A DNA stretch of 63,642 nucleotides, counting the filler, from Perkinsus chesapeaki ATCC PRA-425 (taxonomy: Eukaryota; Protista; Perkinsozoa): assembly GCA_013115145.1 (NCBI GenBank). It is 8 parts of 8 records of this genome, joined end to end, with 100 filler letters (N's around TTAATTAATTAA, not from the genome) between each part and the next. Parts side by side here need not be neighbours in the genome. Positions count along the whole stretch, not along the records: positions 31,003 to 48,362 come from JAAPAO010000683.1; 7 more parts are not named here. The stretch is one strand, 5' to 3'. The position numbers and the translations under genes were made by a program. The notes below the pieces were generated by a model that saw only the letters and a list, made by a program, of their open reading frames with translations, made no database searches and was not told the DNA's origin. Positions 30,651 to 48,362 of the stretch are shown here, piece after piece; position 1 is the stretch's first letter, and the number at the start of each line of letters is the position of its first letter.

Positions 30651-33600
30651 GAGGCTTTCGTAATGATTCTCCTTAGGGAGCGGAGAGTGGTATGTTGGAG
30701 AATGCTGTCTTTAGTACAGTGTTATCAATCAGAGCCTTTTATGAGAGCGACTGCTACTTTCTTTGTGATGACGATTGTGGAAGTTGCTGGTCATAGTTGG
30801 GTTATCAATCTCAGGGGTGATATTAAAAGTGGCCTACCAAGGCATGGTGAAACCACACATGCTCATCCAGATCAATATTATGCAGTAAGTGATTTATCGT
30901 ACNNNNNNNNNNNNNNNNNNNNNNNNNNNNNNNNNNNNNNNNNNNNTTAATTAATTAANNNNNNNNNNNNNNNNNNNNNNNNNNNNNNNNNNNNNNNNNN
31001 NNGCTAGATATCTTAGCTCATACGCAAAGGGGACATCTAACACAAATGGATACTGTCTACACAAATATCTTCACACCTCAAGGATCTTAGTAAGAGCCTC
31101 TTACCATACGATGGTGGCGGCCTTTCTCCCGACTGCATATTGCATACAGTAGATACATTTAGTATATATTATACACTGCAGCGTGTGTAATAAATCATTA
31201 GTGATGACTCGAATTACAAGACAGATACGTAACCAGTGCTACTGGGTCACTGAGCATTGCCTAGACGCGCTTATGAAGCAACTTGAGCCGCTTCATAGCC
31301 TCAAGTTGAGGACCTGCAAAGAGGAGCGCTTTGATGAAAAAATTCCGAGCCATATGTGGTATCTGTTTCGGAATCTGCTGACCCGGGTATAGCCTACACT
31401 GTGTAGGGAGGCACGAAACAGTATGGGATATAATTGTTGAACTGACAGTGCGCCTCCCTCCATATTAGCAAATGTGGGCTCTTTGGTTTTTGGGTATGCG
31501 CCAAGACGCAGATCACCTTTTATGGCACTCAAATGTGATAATTATATCATTTCGGTGGAATTATGGGAGCTAGATTTGCCCAGCTAGCTTATGAAGTGTA
31601 GCTTTACACTTCATATAGCTTTTCACTTCAGCTTATATACTCATTACGTATAAAATGCCTCCGTTCGGACGCAAGATTCGGTCATGTAGGCCGCGTGACA
31701 GTTGTGACTGTTGATTTGTGTAGGTCTAAAATTCCACTCGCCCGTTTTTTCGTGAAACGGTCGCGTCCGGTAGCTCAATGCATTTTCCATAGCCTGAAAC
31801 CGATATATCTAAAATTTCATGCCCTAACTCGTAAAATTGAATGAATGAGCCCTGCCAATCGAAAAACACTCTTTAGATGGCGGGTACTGTACCAAAACTT
31901 GAAAATCACAAGTTGCGGAATTGAAGTTGCAACCTCCATCCTAGCTCTGATTCGCTAGTGCAGTAGTGACAAGGCAACTAGGTTTGACAATTAATATCCC
32001 GAAATATAGACGAACCTAAAACATGGGGTCGTCTGATGGTCTCACTACATCCCATGTTCTGTTACAGAACTTCTGTAGCCAGGCTACAGTAGACTTGCAC
32101 TTAAAATATATGTGTGGTACGATTCCACGACAGTTCGAATCGCACTCGAATTAACGGAATGAAAACTTGAATCCAGTGGCGCGACAAACCAATGTTTTTT
32201 ACAGTAGTTCTACCATCCTGAGGTGCTACCGAGCATAAGAGCAATAATAAAACTATTCACTCATTCCTGTGGCTGTTGTCGCCTACAAACTGTAGACTAT
32301 AATTTGTGTGTAACATGGCAACGCTAGGAACCAAGTTGGTTCAACCAACGCCAACACTCATCTAGCAGCTTCGCGAATTGCACTTGAGCTTCGCGTGTAA
32401 GTAGATGTCTGACGGCTGTTAGCTACAATTTAGACTAGCTTATTCCATATAGTCTCAGATCACGAAGCAGGTATCTATAACATATAAGATACGACGATGT
32501 CATGAATACATGACGGACTACTTCAATTCGTCATATACCTATATCATACATATTGGAAGACTCCACTAAGCCCGAGCGTCAACCGAGTTGAGTGTTGGTT
32601 GGGGTTCACCTGCAGAGACGCGGTTATCGTTCGATCCGCAGGGATCGAAAAAACCGCCCCAGTACATTGAACCTCATTGACAGCCTTGTGGTAACACCAG
32701 GCTATCAAAAACAACGCAGTTTTCATCGTTCGTTGAATTGAGCCTTTGTAACAGTCAGTTCGATGGAAAATTGATGGAGTTTTTGTGAGCATGTCATAGT
32801 CAGTCTGGGCTCAGACTGACAGACTAAATAAATAGCTTATCACAGCAGTAAGATTATGAAACTTCTAGTGATACCGGTATCATAATAGTTGAAACTGACA
32901 ATTATACCTGAATGATGAGGGATATCCCTAATCATTTTCGGTTCACCTCTTCGCAGTTACAGACTGAAGTATATAGCAATTGGCTCGAAACCTCGTAAAG
33001 CGAACGTACTCAGTTCCCAAAAGCTTATGCAAACCGCCATATCTATCGTTAACTCAGTATCACGTTCGACATTGTGAGAAAATCATCTGGTCGGGTTCCA
33101 AATGGGAGGGTGGCTTCAATCTCGTCTACTATGCTAGTTTATCGAGAAACGATCCTGATAAGCGGAATGAGCTGGCGAATGTAGCGGCTGTGAGATCTCC
33201 CGAGATTAAGGGACCGCACGCACACCTCAAATAATTTCAGACACAAATGCACGAAACAAAGATATTGGATTTGCACTATATTGAAGCACCCTCCGTAGGG
33301 GTATCTTCTAACTGAAGATTCATAACAAATACGATGTGTTGGTCGGGCACGGCTCGTTGTCGAGCTGAGCCTGGTTCGACCATCGATACAAAAATCGATG
33401 TTTCATGGCTCAAAAAGAGAGCAATTGGCGAGAACCGGTACGGATCTGTGTATGACCTGAGCTGGTTGCCAGACATCGTACAGGATGTGGCGGAGACTGC
33501 CACTAGACGCAGGTTGCGTCATACAATCACCAGAGTGATTGAAATATTAAACTCTCGAACAAAAGAGTGCTGACATCTGTCTCACGGGTTCCCGACTATT

Positions 33601-33894
33601 CATACAAACAATATCTAGCCGCCAAGAGATCGTCTCGCACTGTTTGAGATGGGTATTTGAAAAGTTATAGTAATGCTAGTATAGCAGATGACCATGACGG
33701 TCTAATCTGAGTAATGCTAACCTTAACCAGCGCCCATCACGTGCGTGGATTTGCCCTAACGGTACTTCCTCTGTGTTGAAACACCCTACTGACTCAGTAG
33801 TACTGAGAGTTGAATAGAAGATATTGCATGCTACTGTTACAGTAGCGCTTAACCTAACGCTATTCGAAGACTTTGCTATTATCTTCAGGGTTGT

Positions 33895-34085
33895 ACATTC
33901 GGGAACAATTTTTTCCCAAGAAATGTTCCAAGGACTAAATGGGAAGAAACAAAGGTTGGCATTGTTCGGAACAATGCCAACCTTTGTTTCTTGGGAACAA
34001 TTTGTTCCCGGGAACAATGTGAAAGAGGGAACAAAAAAGCCGCAGGCTTGAAAATTTTTTTTACGATTGTTTTTCGGCCAGAAAT
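33895..34085. repeat. GGAACAA/TTGTTCC motif cluster, probably a DNA-transposon subterminal region
   Basis: Multiple direct and inverted copies of GGAACAA within about 190 bp. Confidence 0.5.
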
Positions 34086-36117
34086 GAGGCTTGAATTGTT
34101 ATCTTGCAGTATAGTTCCCACTGGTGAAAAGGGTGAGATCAGTTCCTCTGCTCAGTCCGTTCAGGTTTCTCTGGAGGGAATTTTGGTTACGGTCCGTTGG
34201 GGAAACGTTCGTGCAGTATGCAGGTAAAGTGCACAACCTACTTGACTTGCACACTAACGATAGTTGCTTCGACTGGGTAGTGTTGTATATCCAGTGGATA
34301 TTAGCCACCTATCTGCATCTGTAACCTTCAGCTTCCTCCAGACCGTTAGCCTGCTCTTCCGACACGGCTAATAGAAAGAAGAATCATCAGGACTCAACTT
34401 TCGTACTGCAGATCTGCCCATGAGAAAACTGCGTACTGAATGGCTACTATACATTGTATAGTATACAACGATTGTATTACAATCATTACATTACATCATG
34501 TGCAATGAAACACGCATGTATCATTATGATACTATCATAGGGCCGCTATAAAACAACGCAACACTTGCTGACAAGAAACAAAAAAGACCGACTGCCTGCA
34601 CCTAGAGTCTATGCGGGAGAATATGCACTAGCGATCTTAAAGCGCGCGTAAGCGCGATGGAGGATCAAACTGGTTCGAACTGGCGTTTGACCGGCAGCTA
34701 GTCAGTGACTAGTAGTCACGGTAGGCTAATATTGGCTTAGTTCAATTGAGGCAATTGATTGATGCATTTATTACTGATAACTCTAGACCTAGGATAGATA
34801 GGTCTAGCATAGACCTCGGATAGACCTTTTGAATAATATGCATCTAGTGGTCGGGACCTGTTTATTTGAGTCAAGAGTATCAGTTTTGTGTGCTCAGACT
34901 GCGCAACTCACGCCGATGAGCAGGACCGCGAGTCCGACGGTGAAACGGCAGTGGCGCTCCCTCAGCTTGAGGAGGCCTGAATGGGTCTATATGAATGGGT
35001 CTTATCGACCCTAAGGGTCGATAAGCCCAAATAGATCTGCGCGGTGGCAGAGTCAGTACGGACCTGTGTATAGTCTGAGCTGGCCGCCGCAGATAACTGA
35101 GATAACTGAGTAGCCGGAGACAGATTGAGAACAGATGCAGTTTTGTCACAAGGTTGAATCGCCGTTAAACGGAGTTAGTCACAAACTTTGTGACTACGCA
35201 GCGTCCTACCTACGCATGGCCTAAATCCAGTTGCGACGCAGCGGCTGAGTGCAAACTCTACACTGTAGAGGGACTGATACCCAGCTCATGATTCATAGCA
35301 TTGATTTGATCTCAAACTAAGAGGGCTCATCAGAGAGGCTAGTCAGTACTCTCAGAGTACTACGCTGCATGCGTAAAGGGCTACACCAGTAGAGTGGCTC
35401 ATGCAGGCCAGGATCTGGGGGCCAGGTACTGCGCAGAACGTGCGGGGCTAGCATGAATTGAATGACATACCGACCGAGTAACGGCTCGCATAGACTGCAG
35501 AGTGCACAGTGACCCATATAAGACACACACTGTGCAGGCAGCTCACTGGCGATGGTACAGTGCAGAATGAGTGGGTTGATAGAACTGATATCTTCCGTGA
35601 TACATCTGGAAGACATTACAGTGATCTACATTACGTGGTCGGGGAAGTACCGAACCGCTATTTAATACACCCGTGAATCACGGGCCGTGATTCGGTGAGT
35701 TCGACTACGATAAGGAATAGGTTATTCCAACGAGAGTACCGTAAACACCAGTAGGGTTCCGTTCAGCAAATTGCTTTGAGTCACAGCCTGTAACCCTATT
35801 GTGGTTTTGAGGAGGAGATCAAAGAGTGACCTTCGCAATATTGTTCGACATTGAGAAGCCTCCGTCACTGAGGCCTTCAGTCTGAGGGCCTGAAGCTCAG
35901 TCAGTGATCTGATGGAAGAGCCTCGGTGTCGAGATGGGCCCTGGAATCGGTGCGTGCAGTCCCGCTCAGCGTGTAGTACTTACAGCAAGAGGGAGCAAGG
36001 ACAGATGCAATGGGTCAAAACGGGAGCATATCAGGAAAACAGCTTCTTGCGTGCCTGTGTTCCACATGGGACCTCATCCTCTTCTCGTCCTCGTCACTGT
36101 GAATTATACAATTAGCA

Positions 36118-36205
36118 CCCGGCCCTGTGGCTGCTTCACACGAGAGAGCGGGATTGGGCGATGTCAAGGCAACACTGACCTAAAGGCTCCTGGAAGGTCG
36201 CAACG
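36118..36205. repeat. Dispersed repeat, second copy at 62253-62340
   Basis: Shared CCCGGCCCTGTG..GAGAGCGGGATTGGGCGATGTCA..GTCGCAACG. Probably an LTR or UTR piece. Confidence 0.7.
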
Positions 36206-36779
36206 CTCACCTTGTAGAGTTTAGCACAGATAGACCATTCAGGCCCAGTTATAGCAATAACTGAGGGCGTTCAAGACCGTCATCCCGCTCAACTTTTGGA
36301 GTGTGGCACACTCAGTGTGTTCGGGTTTCGGGTGTGAGTATTCCTCCCGCACTCCCGTGTTCGATGGGATTTTACGGTGATGTGTTAACAACTGAGTAGC
36401 AAGTGCGTTGGACCCGCAGTATGAGTAATTCCTTCGTTCGAGCCCACTAGTTGCACGGCTGTGAGAGTCTTGCTTACTGGTATCAATTACGTCCCTAACA
36501 GGTTTTAATCCTATACAACAATCCAAAACCAGTCAATCTTTTAGCATTTCTAGCTTAGCAGGTCCATCTTGAATTAGTTGGCGCGCTTGTTTGTGCTTGC
36601 GTACAACCCGGGATTAGTAGGGGATATAAAGACTCGTAGCTACATGTGGCCGAACAGAATCGATTTACATACAATATAGCAGGCACACAGCTACAAATGG
36701 GTACATGTAAAATACAGGAACCCCCTACCACACTATGTCAGCTATGGTCTAGTAAAGTATAGTGAGGAAGCAAGATATC

Positions 36780-39362
36780 GAGTCACTTAGCTAAAACATT
36801 CAATACCTTCAACATCACACAGCTAATAGAAAGCTGCGGAACTACAAAGGACGGTGAAGAAATAACCACTCCGACTGGCAGTCGGCGAATGTGTCCACCT
36901 TGAACAAAATGACGAAGGTGCAGTCGGCTATCACCATGGACATAAGAGAGTTCCATCCTTCTCGAGATCTTCAACTGCAGGGATCATCAATTGGAGCTAG
37001 AACAGGTAGCATTCCCTTAAGAGCATGCAATAGAACGGGACAAGTGATGATAGACCGTGATTCTGATCTGAAGAAGATTACCAGCTTTACAGATTTTGCG
37101 TGTTGTTTTCTGAGGTATGCTCAAACTATGTCGGTGTTCCATCCTATGTCTGACAAGAGCTCTAATGTCTCCGACACTGGATATGTTCCAGGAGTGAGTT
37201 TCTACGACTTACTCGCCTACTGGCGTAGACTCTACGATAGTGCAGTTCCTTTGACTGTGGTTGGGGTTCTTATGTACGACCGTCAGTACAGAGACCAGTT
37301 AGCGCTAAAAGTTAGTCAAAGAACAGTGGCTATGAGTGACGGCTTTCGAACGGATGTCAGTCCAAGTATCATGGCTGCGGCCTTAGCTCAGGCCAACCAC
37401 TTGGCGATTATGCGGGGAGTGTCTTCATCATCTTTGGTCTCGGACACGTCGAGGAGGCCGTCACCAGCCTTGTGCAGGATTTCCTCAAAGGTCGGTGCCA
37501 CTTCGGAAAGGACTGCAATTACTCCCATGACTTATCCTCGAGGCCCGCCCAGCGCAACACCAACCCTCCGTATTCAAGGCCTTCCGGTAACAACGGTGTC
37601 CAAGTTAACAACTCACATAGCCAGGCATCGGGTCAGCCTACCGGGAGCGTTGGGCAGAGAGGCGGTAAGAACTAGATATCGCTTAGCGTTTTTTTTATTT
37701 TTTTCTTCAACTCTATTCGTTCCTGTTCTAAGTAAATCCTTACGAAGGATAGTGAGTCATAGCATAGTAAGTTTTGAGTATAAGTGTAGGGCAGATTGCC
37801 CTGTCGTGGAAATATAGTGTCAGATCATACTTGTTTGAGGAGAGTTGCGTATATTAGTGAGTTTAATCTGTTTTAGGTGGTGAGGGTGCTAAATACCATG
37901 GCACCGTCAGCGATTACCAAGATGGTTCGGGCAAGCCGAAGATGTTTCCGTCATCGGACGTGGTTCGCGACGATCACCGTGATCTACATAGATTTCTTGA
38001 GTTAGTGGGGAGAGTAATCGATGATTACGAACTCCACATCGTCCTACAGAATAGCATCGGTGAAGACGGCCGTCTGCTGCCTGAGCGCGCGGAAGAAGTA
38101 GCGGGTCTTTTTGATAGAGCCACTGTAGAGTCACGACGATTGGTACAACAACAGTTTAACGTTGATCTTGGAACGGCGGCTGTCGGGGGGGCGTTGAGGC
38201 CTAGTTTGCTACAGTGGCTTAGCGACGTGGCTGGTGATTCAGACAACGACGTGGAGCTTTGTGGTGAGCTCAACAACGGGATCATCCCGTTCGATGATGG
38301 CTAGATTCATCCCTTGCGGCAAGGGAAATGGCGTCATTTATACGCAATGATCATGCTGCGGCAACACAGAGCAAGTACGGTTCCGTTGCTGACTTCTACC
38401 GTGAGGTGGTTGGGATTGTAACCCGCCCTTTTCCTGCAACGGGTTTGTCAATTACGTTATTTATAGTATAAATTTTATACGGAGTTTAAAGCCGCGCGGG
38501 CTATAAGTATTCTACAGTCAATAGTTATGTTAGTGCAGTAAAGACTACGAACCTGTCATATGGTCATAAGCTATCGGTTTTTGATGAGTATCAGATTGCA
38601 AAGGCGCGCAAATCAGCGGCAAAAATATGCGATTTATCACTGGAGCAAAAGGAGCCTTTAACGCGAGGCCAAGTCGTCGCGCTTGGCGATTTAGACGCCC
38701 ACTATAATAACTCATATGTAACCGCGTGTTTGGTGGGTATATATGCGTTTTTAAGGCCAAAGGAGATCATAAACTTGAATGGTGCGGACTTGTCGTTTCC
38801 GATTGTGTATAGCCGATCAGTCGCAAAATTAGTAATTAGATTTTCGAAGACCAATCAGTGCGGGAAAATGGAGTTTGTGTATGTGGGCTGTGTGTCGGGT
38901 AGGCCGCACGATCAGACCTGCGTTCATCATTGCGCGTTTCATCGCCTGTTGAAGTTGTCCGTACGACAAGCAGATTTACCGCTTTTCATGATCTGTGGGG
39001 AACGCTTGAATTACGATAAGTTCTCATCCGAATTCCGCTGCGTCCTGCGACGCATTGGGGTCCTAACCTTAAGTCTTGAGGATTACGGGCTTCATTCGTT
39101 GCGTCGAACTGGAGTCCAGTTGGGTTATGGCCAAAATGTGGATGAGCATGTGCTGAGAGAACAGGGGCGTTGGTCTTCTAATGCTATACACGAATACCTC
39201 CGGGGGGCCTCTGCGCCCAAACGAGTTCGTTTAGCTGAAGTGATGATGAGAGATGGCGAAGAGCTCGAGTGTGTTTCACATGAAGGTGTGTATCCCGTCC
39301 CGGAGGGTAGATATGCGATCTGTATCGATATTTATAGTGTGCATCTATCTCGTACACAATAG
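36780..39362 (+). mobile_element. Internally deleted DIRS/Ngaro-type YR retrotransposon (gag - truncated pol - YR)
   Basis: Gag (36891-37675) is homologous to the 44609 gag (DLLAYWRRL vs DLIIYWRRL) and has a frameshifted CCCH finger. The pol N-terminus (37877-38304) is homologous to 46276. RT and RNase H are absent. YR follows on the same strand. Confidence 0.8.
38560..39362 (+). CDS. Tyrosine recombinase of YR retroelement (5' end degraded)
   Basis: Catalytic R (FLRPKE), K (SKTNQ), HxxR (HSLRRTG) and GRWSSNAIHEY (W, Y). Confidence 0.85.
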
Positions 39363-39529
39363 ATACTATATATTTATTTCCCGATCTAAGGCTCAACTTG
39401 GCCTTGCATGTGAGATTGATACGAATTAGTGACCGGTAAAGGCAAGGTACGATACCTGCTGAGGGTTTTGTGTTTTGAGTTGATGTAGAGTGGAACACGG
39501 TCTCCCCGGGAATTCTGGTATCGAGAGTG

Positions 39530-40080
39530 GGTGAAGCGTCTCTCCGGTGGATAGCTGCCAAGTCGCTAGTGTCGATATATATATCGGCACCCTGAACCCT
39601 CTGCAGCAGAGGCTCTGCTAGTGGCAGCGGCACCACCGCGTTGAGCGCTATGACCTCGAAATTTGATTGCCCACCCGGTTTGCGGGCTTCGGGTCTCAAC
39701 TTCGCGTTTCGATACCACACCACTCGGGAGGAAGGAATGAAAGTAATACAGGTTAACGAAGTTGAACCCTTTCACTTGAGGACGTCTCCCGATTGAGTTT
39801 GGCACGCTCGTTTATGAGTATGTAGCGTTTGGATTTTTATGGGCGAGCGAAGTATGTTTCGATGACTGTGAGCAAAAGTAAGGTTATTTTCGAGTTTTTT
39901 TTTTTTTTATTTTCTTTTCCCGTCCCGCCCTTGCTGGTGAAGCGTCTCTCCGGTGGATAGCTGCCAAGTCGCTAGTGTCGATATATATATATATATATAT
40001 ATATATCGGCACCCTGAGCCCTCAATTTCGGGTTTCGATACCACACCACTCGGGAGGAAGGAAGGAAGGAACGAAAGTAA
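39530..40080. repeat. Pair of direct repeats (39530-39746 and 39936-40080) downstream of YR
   Basis: GGTGAAGCGTCTCTCCGGTGGATAGCTGCCAAGTCGCTAGTGTCGA(TA)nTCGGCACCCTGA..TTTCGATACCACACCACTCGGGAGGAAGGAA occurs twice. The second copy has a longer (TA)n and an internal deletion. Confidence 0.9.
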
Positions 40081-40775
40081 ACGCTCGCCATGAACTACTT
40101 GGAAGCCGTTGGGAGGCTTCCGGAAACACTCGCGTAAGATCGATTTCTACCAAAAAAATAAGGAAAGCCTAGAGAACCTAAAGTTACCTGTTCATTGGTT
40201 ACATGAGCCCAGTCAAATTGTCCGCCATGTACTCCAATGTGTCCGGCAATCAACCATTTTGCTGAAGTCTTGTAGGTACTCATATTCACCACTTGATTAT
40301 CATTCACCAGAGGTAACCCTTGCAACCAAAAACTGTTGTATAGGTCCAATGCCAGAGAGTGCCTAAAAAGCGCAAAATCAAACAACGCATATTTCTCACC
40401 AAAGCGATATCATCTAGTTCATTTCCTAATCCACCCCAGCCTTGAGCTTCCGCAGGTTTAACCTTCACCCGATTGGTCCTATATCGCCGTGCTGGGTAAG
40501 ACTGACTTTTACCGCAATACTCGGTAGGAGTCCTACCGTAGGACTAAGACCCATAAAAGTCTCCGGACTCAATTGATCGGCAGCGTAACCATGAACAAAC
40601 ACTTTTATCAGTGAGAAAATAAACAGAGAATAACACCAAGGCCCTCACAGTATTATTGAAATGAGCTTTGCGATTCATAATATAATTCTTCTTCTGGTAA
40701 AAGCAACTCCGTGTGAAACTCATCCTGGGACTCCCAGGCTGAGAGCCCAACCCAATGTTCGTGCCCTGCTTCACC

Positions 40776-42120
40776 GGGATGTTAACGATTGGTACACGTA
40801 AATTAGGTACACTTAATGTTTGATCTCCATAAATCACGTTCATACTCAACTCGTTTGCTTGAAACACGTACACAGTCAGCTCGTTCGCTCCTATCCAGAT
40901 CATCGGCAGTTCGACCACCAAAAGTACGTTCACTATTATCTCGTATCCATAAGCTCGGTACACTTGCATTCAGTACACTAAAAGTTCGTACACTTTCATT
41001 TCGTTCACCCCCATTTCATACACCAAAATCTCAATCCACACTTTTTTCATACACGCATATCTCGTACACTTTCATTTCGTACACTCGAAAAATTTTAAAA
41101 GGCAGTTGATGCGGCCGCATCAACTGCCTTTTAAAATTTTTCGGCGCTTAACTCCCAGCATGGTTACCCCGCGCTTTCAGCTTCTCACACTCCCATGAAC
41201 TGAAAATACCCCGGGTTAAATATCCCGCTCCTGGGCGCGTGGGTCTGGTGGGCTGGTAGGCTGTGGGTCGAGCCTAGCCCTCGAAGCATCGAGTCGGTCC
41301 AACAAACGTACCCCATAGGGGGCCGCGTAGATTACGTTCCGGCGGCGCGGCGCGACAAATTGTCGCTGACAAATTCGGTCGACTTGGCGCACCGTCGGCG
41401 GACCAACCGATGCTTGCTCCCGGGAGCGGAGGGATGGGATAAAATATATCGCAAGCGGCGGCAGTTTTCGGGAAATGACTGACCACGATACCGGTTGCCG
41501 AGAGCCGTTTCGCGAAACCGCACGCTGACGATGAGCTGCGCACCACGGATGATACGATATTGTGTCGCGGAAGCGCGCTGTGTGCCGCGCCCATTCGCAT
41601 CGGCATTTAACATGCGTTAACATGTTAACACTCATTAGATTCGAACCTAAAACCATGCCCATGTCAGATAGCCCTCATACCACTAGAGCAATCCTACGTG
41701 GAGTCACCGACTCCTCGGAGAGAGGTCCATGAGCGCGCGGCGTCACGCCGCCCTGCGCGCGCGTACGGAACGCCACGTTAACTGGATACCCGCCGGATTT
41801 TACAACGAGACACTATCGTGTATCGATATATAAAATCCCTGCTAAGTATCCGTCGTCAACACAGTAGAACATTGGGCGAGCTGCGAGGACGAACGGCTGC
41901 TTAGGAGAGACTACAGGGTGTCTCTACGGCTTCCCAAATCTTAGTGTACGACACTCATATGAACGGAATTTTTGTGTACTACTTGGCCCCGAACCTATTT
42001 TTGGCATTTTGTCGACAGAGATTTGAGTGTACGGGAATTCGGTGTACCAGTCAAAAGTCAAAAATTCCGTGTACGAGTTTCATGTGTACGTAATTTATGT
42101 GTACCAATCGTTGTACACGC
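40776..42120. mobile_element. Non-autonomous DNA transposon, GTACAC-repeat family, copy A
   Basis: Left arm 40776-41087 is nearly identical to 58897-59208. Right arm (about 41943-42120) matches about 59867-60052. Terminal inverted sequence AACGATTGGTACAC / GTGTACCAATCGTT. No matching TSD found. Confidence 0.8.
41086..41143. repeat. Perfect 58-bp palindrome centred on GCGGCCGC
   Basis: CGAAAAATTTTAAAAGGCAGTTGATGCGG|CCGCATCAACTGCCTTTTAAAATTTTTCG. Confidence 0.95.
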
Positions 42121-42199
42121 AAATAGAAAGACTCGAACCATTAGCAACATTGGCGCGTCCTTAAATAGAAGGGTCCTTGAAGCATAGACGCTTATTGGT

Positions 42200-44082
42200 G
42201 ATCTTGCGGAGAGTCCCAATGGCAATTAGAGAGACGTCAGCACCAGTGTCGTAGAGGACAGGGCGCACAACACCGCAAACAGATAGATCATCAACGACCA
42301 TAGAGATCTTAGAGGATCTAGACGACGTGCTAGAAGAATGAACACCATTATCAGTATGGAATGCATTAGACTTGGAGTTGAGGTCGGCAGTACTAAGGGG
42401 AGAGACCCATATAGTAGAGTTAGGGTCTGAAGATTGTTGAACTCGTCGACCACTTGAGCATTAGTAGAACGTGTCGATGGACCAGGCCGGGTGGTAGACA
42501 ATTTACCAGGCCGGTATCGATTACCTGCCTTGAACTTCTGCTTATTAGACTTAGCAGTCCTGCCCTTTGATTCCTGGTTTTCGGGTCGGGGTCCACAGGT
42601 TTAGAAGCCGGGCATACATAAGCTAGATACCCAGACTTTAGACGTCTTTGACAGTTCAAGGACTTAGTGGGGACCTCGCACAGATCAGTAGAGTGGTTGC
42701 GGTTACCACAATTAGAACATCTAGTCGCTATATCACTAATCTGACCAGCACATAGACGCGCAGGATGGCCAGATTGTAAACAGCGATAACAAGCGATAGA
42801 CATAGAGTCAGCACCGACCGCGAACGGATAGGGATCAGTAGACTCGCTATCAGTAGCTTCTAAAGTATGAAGTCGAGCAGTAGAAGAACCATTAGACTTG
42901 TTCTTAGCGGACAGACGAGAAGTGACTATCTCATCATAGAGCTTTTGTCGTTATTCACGCCCAAGTCGACGACGCTCGAAGTTCGACAAGGTAGAAACGA
43001 GCTTATCATAAGACACTCTAGAGTCGCTGAGCTCCTTGTCAACCTTCTCACGTAGATATTCGGAGTTGAGACCATCGTAGAGGCGACGCTTGAGAATGTA
43101 CTCATAGGTGCAGATACCCATAAAGTGGAGCTCGGCAACAATAGTCCATTGTCAATAGACTCTAATCTCTCAATATAGTTAGAAAGAGACTCGGAGCTAC
43201 CTTGACGACAGGTAACAACTTGTTACCTGTCGTTACTGGGGTTACTATCGAAAGTGGGGCTTTGTTGATTGAAATATGCCTTGTGTTTTATTAATTTGCC
43301 CTTGTGTTGGACGAATTCAGCCTTTCGTTTTTTATTTCTGACTTTTGTTTTACGATTTTCAATCTTCATTCTAGGAGTAGCTACGAACTCTGAATTTCAT
43401 TCGTCTAATAATGACTTTCGTTCAGTGATTTGAAACTTTTGTTTGACGAAAAGCTGGTTTTGTTCATTCAACTTTCCCTTTTGTTTGACGAATTTGAGAT
43501 TGAAAAGGTGTAGATGAGTTGGAGTGCTCCGAAGTACGTACAATAGGGGCTTTAGGACGATGACTATCGTGTCTAGAAGTAGAAGAACTACTAGAAGACG
43601 ATGCAGTGAACATGTGATCTAGAACCAGCACGGATCTTGTGATGGTAAGAGCCGCGATCTTGAGAGTGCGAACCACTAGAAACGACATGCTGAGCAGAGT
43701 GCTGTAGTGAACGAGAACCACTAGAATGCACTTTAGAATTCTCTACACGAGATGAAGACAAATTCAGAGGCAGAGGCAAACAACTAGAAGGCATAGCAAT
43801 CGAATAGGGCACTAGAGAAAGTTGACCTTCAGGCCCTGGTACCATTTTCCAATTAAAATTGGTGGCACCTTCTGGTAGTTGAGGAACACTACCAGATAGA
43901 GAAATAGCATGCTGTAGTAGACCTCCTTGAGTCGTAGCAACCTTACAAGAAGATTCGAAGTTGCTGTAACCAGTAGCTGCAGCAGCTAGAGTTTCCTTAG
44001 AAACGGTCTTGTTCTGAATGTCAAGAGCCTTGCGCTTAGCGGCGGCCTTAGAGGTCGGAGTCCTGACAATGGTACCGGCCAT
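42200..44082 (-). pseudogene. Degraded LTR-retrotransposon gag-protease
   Basis: CCHC knuckles CYRCLQSGHPARLC and CSNCGNRNHSTDLC. Retropepsin motif PVLYDTGADVSLI near 42225-42262. Broken frames. Confidence 0.7.
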
Positions 44083-44097
44083 ATAGACAGTGCCAAC

Positions 44098-44335
44098 GGG
44101 TGTATCATGTCTCGTACACCGAAAACTCGTACACTTTCACTTCGTTCACCAACCGTACACTGAATACTCGTACACCCCTCGGATCCGTACATCGTTAATT
44201 CGTACACCTTCAATTCGTACACATAAAACTCGTACACCCAATACCCGTACACAAAAAAATCGTACACATAAAACCCGTACACAAAAAACCCGTACATCGA
44301 ATACCCGTACACTATCAAGTCTTACACATTCTCGA
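44098..44335. mobile_element. Isolated terminal arm of a GTACAC-repeat transposon relative
   Basis: Begins GGGTGTAT (reverse complement of the ATACACCC terminus), followed by many CGTACAC units. Confidence 0.65.
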
Positions 44336-44608
44336 GGTCAATTTATTGGGCAGATTAATTCGCGCCCTGAGGCACAGGCGTGCGTGCAGAATATAACACA
44401 ATCGCGCGCGCGTGCAAACATCATGCGTACATTGAACCACTCAGGATCTAAACTGAGACGCGAGGGTCCTTTCTAGTAAACCAAGCCCGAGCCCAGCGGC
44501 CGGCCTGTGCTAGTAGCGACAAGAGACTTGTATAAGCGCTAGTAGCGCGGTCTCCAAACCCCCCCTTTTTTTTACAGTTATTGACCATCAGTCAACTACT
44601 CCACCCCT

Positions 44609-46009
44609 ATGGCCAACCCTAATAACGGTATTAATGGCAATGGAGGCGGAAACGGCATCCCCAACAACAACAACAACAATGGCGACAACAATAACAACAA
44701 CAACAATAATGACAACAACAACAACAACAACGCTAATGGCAACAATGGTAACAACAATGCTAACAACCATGGTAACAACAATGATAACATCAACGGTAAC
44801 AACAACGGTAACATCTACGGTAACAACAACGGCAACAACAACGCTAACCATGGCAATAACGCCATTGGTAACAACAACGGTAACGCCCTTGCCCTAGGTG
44901 CCGAGGCTCGCCCCAAACCTATCAATGACGACCTACTTCGGCTTACGAATGGACTAGACAAGGTCCCAGTCAAACGCGTCCTCGATCTCTGCTCCCAGCT
45001 TGGTATAACCACAGCCGAAATCCTAGCAACGACCGCCAAGCAAGAGGCTGTCTGTGGCGCTATAACTAGGTCGTTGGCCGTCAATGAGCAGATTATCTGG
45101 GGCGTGCTATGCGAAAGGGCAACCGCAGTCCGAAATAGCCCGGTCAAAGTCGATATGGTGGAACTGTCCGGCCTCCTCGCCAACATGACGCGCAAGTATG
45201 GCAGCCCCCCTGATGCGTCCCTAATAACGTCGAGGGCGAGCATCCTAACTAAGATGAAGAAGATAGACGAGGCTCTGACCATGGACATCATGGAGCTGCA
45301 CCCAAACCGAGAGTCCAAGTCGGCGAACCGCAGCACCATCAACATCTCCGAAAACAATCAGCTAGTGACCGAAGAGGAAACTCCGAAGGGTAAGGCTCGG
45401 GATTTCTCGGAGTTTTCGATTTGCTTTATGCGCTGGGCAGTGATGCTGTGTACCATTCACCCTATGTCTTCCAACGCCGACACGTGCCAAACCAGCGGAG
45501 CCAGCCTCATCGACCTCATCATTTATTGGCGCAGGCTTGCTGATCTATTGGCCCCGCTGACCATGGATCACCTGGTTCAGTACGACAGCGACTACCGAAG
45601 GCGGGTCGCCATTATGATAGCTGGTGAATCCACTACGCTCTCCGAGGCTCTGAGACAAGACGTGGCCCCTACGGTGTTATCAAGCGCTCTGGCGACAGCG
45701 GCAATGGCAGCGGCGGCGGCTACTAAGAAGAATAACGACTCCAAGCCCACCAAGACTCAGAAGGCGCCAAAGTCGAACGATGCATGCTACCACTTCCTTC
45801 GCGGCTCATGCCGCCGCGGCAACTCCTGTCGCTTTGTCCACGACACCCAGGAGCAAAAGCGCCGCAGGTCGACGCCAGCCTTTGGTCAGAGGTCGGAGCC
45901 GTATGATCGCCAGTCGCAACATGAACCTAAATCATCTTGGTCAAGCTATGCTTCTCCCAAAGACAGCCCTTCGAGCGCCGAAGCCAGTCGGAAGGCTAAA
46001 AGTGAGTAA
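44609..46009 (+). CDS. Gag of DIRS/Ngaro-type retroelement: Asn-rich N-terminus, CCCH finger
   Basis: 466-aa ORF with a poly-N/G tract and CYHFLRGSCRRGNSCRFVH, immediately upstream of RT/RNase H. Confidence 0.8.
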   Translation: MANPNNGINGNGGGNGIPNNNNNNGDNNNNNNNNDNNNNNNANGNNGNNNANNHGNNNDNINGNNNGNIYGNNNGNNNANHGNNAIGNNNGNALALGAEARPKPINDDLLRLTNGLDKVPVKRVLDLCSQLGITTAEILATTAKQEAVCGAITRSLAVNEQIIWGVLCERATAVRNSPVKVDMVELSGLLANMTRKYGSPPDASLITSRASILTKMKKIDEALTMDIMELHPNRESKSANRSTINISENNQLVTEEETPKGKARDFSEFSICFMRWAVMLCTIHPMSSNADTCQTSGASLIDLIIYWRRLADLLAPLTMDHLVQYDSDYRRRVAIMIAGESTTLSEALRQDVAPTVLSSALATAAMAAAAATKKNNDSKPTKTQKAPKSNDACYHFLRGSCRRGNSCRFVHDTQEQKRRRSTPAFGQRSEPYDRQSQHEPKSSWSSYASPKDSPSSAEASRKAKSE

Positions 46010-46135
46010 TTGGTTTCTATTGTCGCCGATAAGTTATCGGCTTCTACTAATCGTATTTCGTTGACTCGTCTTCGCGCTGCGTTCTGGGAGTGCCCAGAGT
46101 CTAATAAGACAACAGACTACACCACTCGCCCTCAG

Positions 46136-48285
46136 ATACAGGGCCGGGTAAGAGCCACTCGTGGCCGTGTGATGAGCTGCGCGAGCGCGAACCCGACGCC
46201 CCAGCGGGCTTCCAAGATGGTACGGGAATTTCCGCAGAGCTCCCCGCAGATGACGCCACACACCCGCCCAAGGCGGTGTCCGATCACGAAGCGAAAGCCT
46301 TCTACATCATCAACAGGATCACTCAGAAGTGGCGGCTTGCTGAAGAGCTAAGCACCAGTCTAAGTCCATCCGGAGCCATCCGGGCCGAGTGCATAGACCG
46401 GATTAATCTACTCTTCATCGATGCCTCAAACGACCTCCGCAGAGAGCTCACTGAGGCCTTCCCAGGGTACGGTGCGGAGACCGCTAGGGTCGGTGGTCCC
46501 TTATACCCCGGAATCATCCGTCTGCTGAGTACAATTTTTGACGAGGGCCGAGATCCTACACTGGCGGACGAATTAAACAGCGGTGTACACCTTGGGGCTC
46601 TGACTACGCTGTCCGTCTCTGGAGTCTTTCCACCGAAAGATACCCAGAAGCCCAGGGAGGAGTTCGCTCCGTGCAGAAGCCCCCACTATGAGAACTATGT
46701 CAGCGCGCGCGATGCCAAACAAGCGGTCGAAGAGGCAATACAAGCCGAAGTTAGAGCTGGTAAGATCAGAGAACTAGCCCCTCATCAACTCCGCACCCCC
46801 GGAAGGCTGTTTAGCAAGCTTGCGGCCATACCCAAGCGCCTGGATGCCTCAGGGAACCCAACTGCCTACAGATTGGTAGAGGACCTGAAACGAAGTGGAA
46901 CTAATCAGCTGATAGACCTACATGAGAGCGTACAGCTTCCTTCAGCGGGAGACCTCAAGCAGCTCGCCCAGAACCTAATTTTCGACGATACGGGTGCTCT
47001 CAAGGACTACGTCGGAGCAGTGACGGACTTCGAAGGGGCGTATCGCCACCTTTTCATCTGCCCTGAAGAGCGACACCTTTGCTCCCTGAAGCTGAACAAT
47101 AAATACTATGAGAACCTCGCGATGCCCTTCGGGGCCCCCAGCTCTTGCTGGAACTTCTGCAGGCTATCCAGCAAGTCACATCGCATACAGCATCGGCTTG
47201 GAGAAATATCGCGCATACTAACCGGACAAAGCGAGTCCTCGCGAGGGCTTATATACATTGATGATGCTATATGGCTGTTACCGGTGGCTGGATACTTTAC
47301 CTTACTGGTCAAACTCCTGGTAGTTCTACCACTCATCGGGCTCCAAATATCGTGGCGCAAATGTATCTACGGCTCCAAAAGTCTGCGCTTCATAGGATAC
47401 TCGATCGACATTGGCACTGGTGCACGGCAGGGACCACATATCAGCATCCCCCCCGGGAAGCTCGAGAAAATTAAGTCCGAGCTCGCCGCTCTCCAGGCCC
47501 AGGGGGCCACAGGAGCGTGGGTTAAAGACATAGAACGGCTATCTGGGCGGCTGAACTGGATCTCAATGGTGTGTCCTTTCACACGCTCCTTTATCTCACC
47601 CTTGTACGCAATTTGCCAAATGGCGTGTAAAAAGGGCCTACACAAGGTTCAATTCTCGAAGTCATCCGAGACGCACAAATGTCTCAGCTGGTGGGCAAGC
47701 ATTGTAGACGAAGCCATACTGCCAATGAACCCCTTTAGGCTAGCTCTACCCTTAGCCCCTACGGCCATACAGGACCGTGTCCGTATAGCAACTGATGCGT
47801 CCACCATAGGCATTGGTGGTTGGGCTTCATATCGGGGACGAGTCCTGTGGTTTAAGGTCGACTTAACCAACGTTGACAACCTGCACGGATGGAGACAGTT
47901 CTTGGTCAACAAGAGCTCCCCGCAGTCAGGTGATATGGTTCTGTTGGAGACGATGGCAGGCGTAATAGGTATCACGGCTGCTCTAGACGGCTTCGAAGAA
48001 GGTATTTCCGACCGCACATGCTTCTCCTTCTTTACCGACAACGCTGGCACGAAGCGGGCGCTGACCAAGTTTAGGTCTCCCACGCCCAGAATTAACGCTA
48101 TCCTTATGGCGACTGTAAGTCGACTTGCCAGAGTATGTTATCGATGGCATGCTGAGTATATACCATCGGCCGAAAACAAGGCGGCAGACATCATAAGCCG
48201 CGAGGCTAAACCCGCACCTTTCCTCCCAAAGCACTGGATTAGACTTAAATGTCATCTACCTCCCGCACTTCCGGCCTGTCTCTGA
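46136..48285 (+). CDS. Pol (RT + RNase H) of DIRS/Ngaro-type retroelement
   Basis: RLVEDLKRSG, DFEGAYRHL, AMPFGAPSS, YIDD, then RNase H ATDAS, LETMA, TDN, ADIISR. No integrase or protease. The frame is open from 46108. Confidence 0.9.
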
Positions 48286-48289
48286 TAGT

Positions 48290-48362
48290 GGTGTTCATGT
48301 CCCATACACCGAATACTCGTACACCTTCGACTCATGTCTCGAATACTCGTACATTTACGACC
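48290..48362. mobile_element. Partial GTACAC-family arm directly after the pol stop, cut by a gap
   Basis: GGTGTTCATGTCCCATACACCGAATACTCGTACACC resembles 44098-44170. Confidence 0.55.

Follow-up and report, generated by a model that had tools for sequence, protein, structure and literature searches.

How does a retrotransposon make its Pol protein when a non-coding spacer with stop codons separates pol from gag? This question is raised by a stretch of the genome of Perkinsus chesapeaki ATCC PRA-425, a member of a genus of oyster and clam parasites. Within the window (the whole stretch of DNA, 63,642 nucleotides (nt) with filler included, along which all positions are counted here), the piece examined runs from 31003 to 48362 (17,360 nt) and comes from JAAPAO010000683.1. 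It has a G+C content of 48 %, is eukaryotic in character, and holds two divergent copies of tyrosine-recombinase retrotransposons, element 1 (~36858-39359) and element 2 (from 44609); no Pfam or Rfam matches were found in this piece outside the two copies. In both copies the spacer has the layout of a short intron. It is probable that this intron is kept in the genomic copies, with Gag being made from unspliced RNA and Gag-Pol from spliced RNA, as in the Ogre elements of plants.

The spacer between gag and pol

The candidate introns are as follows, with slashes marking proposed exon boundaries here and below.

37665-37876, + strand: candidate spliceosomal intron of element 1, 212 nt, phase 1, GTAAGA...TTTTAG, with the gag stop codon TAG (37673-37675) inside
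46002-46135, + strand: candidate intron of element 2, 134 nt, phase 1, aaa/GTGAGT...CCCTCAG/ata, with stop codons in all frames

In element 1, the gag frame ends with the residues QRGGKN before its stop codon, and the donor GT (37665-37666, context gcg/GTAAGA) is 8 nt upstream of that stop. A TAA at 37864-37866 precedes the opening of the pol frame at 37867, and the interval ends 10 nt beyond this opening, where the acceptor AG (37875-37876) has the context TTTAATCTGTTTTAG/gtg. A preliminary description of the locus had proposed a donor just before the gag stop, a T-rich interior, and an acceptor directly after an in-frame stop, and each of these is present. The interval contains a run of T, its G+C content of 35 % is below the 57 % and 53 % of the coding sequence on either side, and its three frames contain 2, 10, and 7 stop codons. 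No protein homology was found inside it by tblastn with proteins of the family. Insertion of a transposon was considered as a source of the 212-nt spacer and rejected, there being no second copy of the interval in the piece. In element 2, the GTGAGT donor is 5 nt upstream of the gag stop; other in-frame acceptors are possible at 46108 and 46141.

Both lengths, 212 and 134 nt, leave a remainder of two when divided by three, and exon 1 supplies one base of the split codon, therefore the candidate introns are in phase 1. In both elements, removal of the interval restores one open, conserved frame running from gag into pol. The junction that results in element 1 is the one previously proposed, QRG-G-GEGAKYH, in frame with the N-terminus of pol. 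Both intervals have the ends of a U2-type intron (GT...AG), GTRAGN donors (GTAAGA and GTGAGT), a branch-point-like YTRAY motif (TTAAT at -14 in element 1 and CTAAT at -35 in element 2), and a pyrimidine-rich 3′ end, where C and T make up 60-65 % of the final 20 nt.

A further GTRAG is present at 37880 in element 1 and at 46148 in element 2, 4 and 13 nt past the proposed acceptors. This is probably coincidence, since both are within conserved pol coding sequence.

Many bare GT/AG pairs would restore the frame (element 1 has eight and element 2 has 23), and on their own they carry no meaning; the signal rests in the details. Among these pairs, GTRAG donors are found exactly once per element, at a distance from the gag stop of 8 nt in element 1 and 5 nt in element 2. 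There are 32 GTRAG sequences in the 17,360 nt, and the chance that both elements have one in the 9 nt preceding the gag stop is ~3e-4.

Elements 1 and 2 are homologous but distant, with identities of 33 % in gag, 26 % in the gag tail (BLASTP), and 28 % in the N-terminal domain of pol. Across this distance the layout is common to both: a GTRAG donor two to three codons before the gag stop, a non-coding spacer that is not a multiple of three, an acceptor where coding in the pol frame starts, and phase 1. When the gag tails are aligned by BLASTP, ~2 residues or less separate the donors, and conserved pol coding starts 13-25 codons past the acceptor in both elements. The intervals themselves do not align; the downstream codons for [YF]QDG do (CCAAGATGGT, encoding QDG). 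It had been suggested beforehand that the two introns match in position and phase, are unrelated in sequence, and point to a conserved expression strategy. The first two statements hold, and the third is supported as far as the sequence layout goes, the same arrangement being seen at ~30 % protein identity.

The mechanism proposed is a short U2-type GT-AG phase-1 intron between non-overlapping gag and pol frames, with the gag stop just inside its donor end. That Gag is encoded by unspliced RNA follows directly from the sequence; the protein would end two to three codons past the donor. The same unspliced RNA would be the template for reverse transcription, so that genomic copies would keep the intron. 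In spliced RNA both the stop codon and the frame offset would be gone, leaving a Gag-Pol fusion as its product, with the efficiency of splicing setting the ratio of Gag to Gag-Pol, a role taken by frameshifting or readthrough in other retroelements. Splicing at these junctions is suggested by the layout, and retention of the intron in genomic copies suggests that some transcripts escape splicing and that copying is confined to unspliced RNA. For the wider proposal, that a Perkinsus-specific Ngaro-like clade has kept a phase-1 gag-pol intron through divergence to ~30 % identity as its sole route to Gag-Pol, the chances are judged to be even.

Composition of the two elements

Each exon of the two elements was searched by itself; for queries across the junctions, natural GenBank proteins were taken. 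Word-index protein searches (with element 2 gag, the gene model designated P0001, and the recombinase) returned one Perkinsus protein each, and the family was recovered from a full HMMER scan only. Every protein relative that could be detected is a GenBank gene model, from Perkinsus olseni, P. chesapeaki, or P. marinus, and the closest are only 40-61 % identical; no relative was found when metagenome and viral contigs were scanned with the family alignment.

Element 2 is largely intact, its spacer being flanked by two long open reading frames (ORFs), one of 466 codons and the other of at least 669.

44609-46009, + strand: gag ORF of element 2, 466 amino acids (aa), intact, with an Asn-rich N-terminus, a CCCH zinc finger (~45782-45844), and the stop codon TAA at 46007-46009
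46136-48285, + strand: pol ORF of element 2, with an N-terminal domain, a reverse transcriptase (RT) with YIDD, an RNase H, and a stop codon at 48283-48285

The first ORF is considered gag-like from its position 5′ of pol and its CCCH finger, which is of a nucleic-acid-binding type. It is 61 % identical to P. olseni KAF4660296 (P0001) over the shared part. At its N-terminus, 44636-44895 is of low complexity, Asn-rich, with AAC-rich repeats that have a period of roughly 12 nt. The pol frame is open from 46108 onward, and its first ATG comes 328 codons past the acceptor. Pfam on element 2 alone gives a weak RVT_thumb match only. The presence of RT and RNase H, as in elements of the DIRS order, is shown by the YIDD motif and by alignment to P0002 (46 % identity over 46195-48216, tblastn) and P0031, which matches 46540-48201 and itself scores 30.0 bits for RVT_1 (cut-off 29.6) and 26.0 bits for RVT_3 (cut-off 21.6).

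The pol ORF of element 2 ends ~35 residues past the RNase H motif, its stop at 48285 being directly before a CGTACAC array, and the element runs off the piece at 48362 with no recombinase between the stop and the end of the piece. In the P. chesapeaki model P0002, the protein exits RNase H ~30 codons before the equivalent stop and then enters the recombinase. This path hints at a second intron, possibly across the CGTACAC array.

Element 1 is less complete, and its parts are spread over several frames.

36858-37406, + strand: first part of the gag-like ORF, frame 0, with 33 % identity to element 2 gag residues 207-359 (E 3e-32)
37406-37442, + strand: gag frameshift zone, frame 0 to frame 2, where the tblastn matches of P0007 change frame with 12 residues (36 nt) between them
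37442-37664, + strand: C-terminal part of gag, frame 2, with a CCCH zinc finger (~37478-37531), ending at the proposed exon 1 boundary
37877-38301, + strand: N-terminal domain of pol, frame 1, with 28 % identity to the N-terminus of element 2 pol (E 1e-10), also matched in tblastn by P0003 and P0153
38298-39359, + strand: predicted tyrosine recombinase, frame 0, directly abutting the N-terminal domain of pol

The 5′ part of gag was not detectable upstream of 36858. P0007 is 43.5 % identical to 36885-37406 by tblastn. The change of frame in gag was considered as a second intron and rejected, because it falls within ~36 nt, which is too short; it is therefore read as a disabling indel. Every Pfam match of the element 1 CCCH finger is under the curated cut-off, with zf-CCCH at 20.2 bits against 20.5 and the best E-value, 4.4e-5, belonging to zf-CCCH_DUS3L (23.8 bits against a cut-off of 30). 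The conserved YQDGSG motif of pol is 13 codons past the acceptor, and the first ATG of the pol frame, 21 codons past the acceptor, is downstream of this motif. RT and RNase H have been deleted (junction near 38300), and there are in-frame stops in the recombinase at 38469-38471 and 38487-38489. From its sequence, element 1 is a dead, non-autonomous deletion derivative that preserves the gag-pol junction as a fossil rather than using it.

The region 38298-39359 of element 1 is predicted to encode a tyrosine recombinase, based on the identity of its relatives, its motifs, and structural comparison. Its identity with the C-terminal, recombinase part of P0153 and P0159 (longer cluster relatives of which also carry RT) is 51 %, and with P0002 it is 42-44 %. 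In P0002, P0008, and P0153 the tyrosine recombinase is in one protein with RT. The motifs LRxxE, HSLRRTG, and GRWSS...Y, which follow the R...HxxR...W...Y pattern, are present. No match was found for this region with Pfam (including Phage_integrase) or by sequence search against the PDB. The top Foldseek matches to a model of the protein were exclusively tyrosine recombinases (XerA, XerH, XerD, Cre, and Flp) and integrases; the best had E 2.8e-3 and probability 0.99, none reached E 1e-3, and the model, made from a four-row alignment, is of low confidence (mean pLDDT 52.7).

By domain order, both copies look like members of a Perkinsus-specific, Ngaro-like group of tyrosine-recombinase retrotransposons. 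The Perkinsus elements share with the Ngaro/DIRS order gag, pol (RT and RNase H), and a tyrosine recombinase, together with the lack of a protease or DDE integrase (PMC3783388); no aspartic protease (RVP) or DDE integrase (rve) was found when full-length relatives were scanned with Pfam. A Dam-like methyltransferase, as expected of DIRS1-like or PAT-like elements, was not found by Pfam in the full-length relatives P0002 and P0005, and P0008 has ~100 residues between RNase H and the recombinase, too little room for one. Since no methyltransferase follows RNase H, the domain order resembles that of Ngaro. There are also differences, in that the recombinase ORF of the known Ngaro/DIRS elements is in frame or frameshifted, their gag finger is CCHC rather than CCCH, and the RT and recombinase of the Perkinsus elements have diverged nearly beyond detection by Pfam. 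DIRS1-like sequences have been listed earlier for P. marinus (PMC3266345).

The terminal repeats of Ngaro are arranged in the order A-pol-B-A-B (PMC3783388). Of such repeats, only arrays of CGTACAC units were seen here, on both sides of gag-pol of element 2 and 3′ of element 1.

44100-44350, + strand: CGTACAC array with units 15 nt apart, upstream of element 2 gag, from the repeat search
48293-48361, + strand: further CGTACAC array
40790-41090, + strand: further CGTACAC array, ~1.4 kb downstream of the element 1 recombinase
41940-42110, inverted: further CGTACAC array

The arrays were recorded as direct families D2-D4 and inverted pairs I1-I7. From their sequence and placement, the arrays may be terminal repeats or recombinase-binding sites. 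Directly after the array at 40790-41090 there is a perfect 58-nt palindrome (41086-41143), made up of two 29-nt arms with no spacer. Near-identical direct repeats are present at 39530-39601 and 39936-40023 (55 nt at 100 % and 27 nt at 96 %, ~406-422 nt apart), and a further direct-repeat pair is at 39695/40021, in the non-coding stretch 3′ of the element 1 recombinase. The repeats at 39530-40023 suggest a local tandem duplication.

Gene models of relatives and other routes to Pol

Gag and pol are united in single proteins in gene models of P. olseni and P. chesapeaki, and several Perkinsus models join gag, RT, RNase H, and tyrosine recombinase in a single coding sequence. The full order of gag, N-terminal domain, RT, RNase H, and recombinase is present in P0002 (KAF4650786, 1385 aa) and P0008 (KAF4677994, 1451 aa). 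P0001 aligns to element 2 gag up to 46000 and to pol from ~46132, and its junction, ...RKPK/DTGP..., is at the same point as that predicted for element 2, ...RKAK/(N)TGP.... P0017 is partial at both ends and has 336 aa of the gag-to-pol stretch on a contig of 1280 nt, which would leave ~270 nt of non-coding sequence, presumably an intron, within that stretch.

Several points weigh against a conserved, spliced gag-pol intron. The gene models that support it are predictions built on the same logic; they are not independent and are mutually inconsistent at the junction. The near-identical copies P0001 and P0152 have been modelled with different donors, such that 27 residues present in one model are absent from the other, and 34 residues of the gag-pol linker are found in only one of the near-identical P. 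olseni models P0157 and P0084. Both of these disagreeing pairs are P. olseni copies from different isolates, and public gene models are unreliable at the gag-pol intron. The GT/AG layout has been read in the DNA of two copies, elements 1 and 2, and family-wide conservation rests on these. Element 1 is dead, and its splice signals are under no current selection. The gag frame of element 2 stays open for 113 codons past its TAA (46010-46351) and overlaps the pol frame, leaving a contrived route of readthrough plus frameshifting. The pol-like models P0013, P0015, and P0041 of related families, from P. olseni and P. chesapeaki, seem to start with their own Met, having a basic MP.RR... N-terminus ~80 residues upstream of an RDG[ST]G motif, therefore gag-pol fusion may be needless for some Perkinsus tyrosine-recombinase elements. 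Lastly, no Perkinsus intron or splice-site statistics were found in the literature searched.

The main rival to retained and partly spliced introns is that pol is made on its own, by non-AUG initiation, by termination and reinitiation, or by trans-splicing of a spliced leader onto what is here presumed to be a cis acceptor AG, with the GT being irrelevant. In Perkinsus a spliced leader is trans-spliced onto many mRNAs (PMC2868825), the acceptor is placed right where the pol frame opens, and the models with their own Met and basic N-terminus fit separate expression. Against this, element 2 lacks a pol ATG for 328 codons and the first in element 1 comes after YQDGSG. Separate expression also leaves unexplained both the presence in each element of a GTRAG donor no more than 9 nt from the gag stop and the restoration of the gag-to-pol frame in the same phase by both spacers, and it is considered unlikely. 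Coincidence in decayed debris, where the spacer would be mutated or inserted junk and the copies would have no organized expression, would suit the degraded state of element 1 (a frameshift, two stops, and the loss of RT and RNase H), the many bare GT/AG pairs that restore the frame, and the inconsistent gene models. It does not suit element 2, in which intact ORFs flank the spacer, nor the sharing of one layout by copies only ~30 % identical in protein. The spacers are, moreover, unique in the piece and without transposon-like repeats, and the extended splice consensus, branch-like motif, and dip in G+C content are all there; coincidence is judged quite improbable.

A simple programmed frameshift is excluded, because the gag and pol frames overlap or abut in neither element; the gaps between the gag stop and the pol opening are 37676-37866 in element 1 and 46010-46107 in element 2, and in element 1 each frame is blocked several times. 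More elaborate recoding, with readthrough of the stop codon followed by a ribosomal frameshift, could draw on the open gag frame of element 2, which overlaps the pol frame at 46108-46351. Two events would be required, and the route is impossible in element 1, where there are several stops per frame in 37665-37876. An alternative-frame ORF of 113 codons is also unremarkable at 57-60 % G+C, probably a by-product of the high G+C content, and recoding of this kind is very improbable.

Splicing in known retroelements and possible consequences for Perkinsus

Retroelements are copied through RNA, and an intron is expected to be lost unless unspliced RNA specifically serves as the template, therefore retained introns are rare and informative. 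The Ogre elements of legumes are reportedly the experimentally shown case in which removal of an intron joins two polyprotein ORFs, and by analogy Ogre is the closest mechanistic precedent for the arrangement proposed here. In Ogre, too, an intron of a few hundred non-coding bases lies between two ORFs, and the upstream protein and genomic RNA come from the unspliced form and the fusion from the spliced form. The differences are that Ogre is a long terminal repeat element with a DDE integrase rather than a tyrosine recombinase, is found in another kingdom of hosts, and is split after the protease, whereas the Perkinsus elements are split after gag. Splicing has been shown experimentally for Ogre; for the Perkinsus elements it is deduced from sequence. 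In copia of Drosophila and BARE1 of barley, the ratio of Gag to Pol is likewise reached through splicing and not recoding, however the polarity is opposite, in that unspliced RNA encodes Gag-Pol and splicing produces a Gag-only message (PMC3735527), whereas here splicing would create Gag-Pol. No mention of an intron was found in an overview of DIRS1-like elements (PMC3266345) or a survey of fungal DIRS/Ngaro elements (PMC3783388), and full-text literature searches of limited scope yielded no account of an intron naturally placed between gag and pol in the tyrosine-recombinase order.

The relatives identified are annotated as 'C3H1-type domain-containing protein' or as hypothetical host proteins, not as retroelements, and no paper among those searched offers an interpretation of the intron. 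Dozens of such 'hypothetical' and 'C3H1-type domain-containing' proteins of Perkinsus are instead retroelement Gag-Pol-recombinase polyproteins, with their junctions modelled inconsistently. If the clade-wide proposal is true, the ratio of Gag to Gag-Pol in these elements would be set by the efficiency of splicing, and spliced RNA would have to be kept from reverse transcription. Both the DIRS order and the alveolates would thereby gain their first example of this kind, with an origin separate from that of Ogre in plants. As a second independent case, in tyrosine-recombinase elements of an alveolate parasite, the arrangement would indicate that splicing has been used repeatedly to balance Gag and Gag-Pol. 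P. marinus is transfectable, therefore these elements would offer a simple system for the sorting of spliced and unspliced RNAs between translation and reverse transcription.

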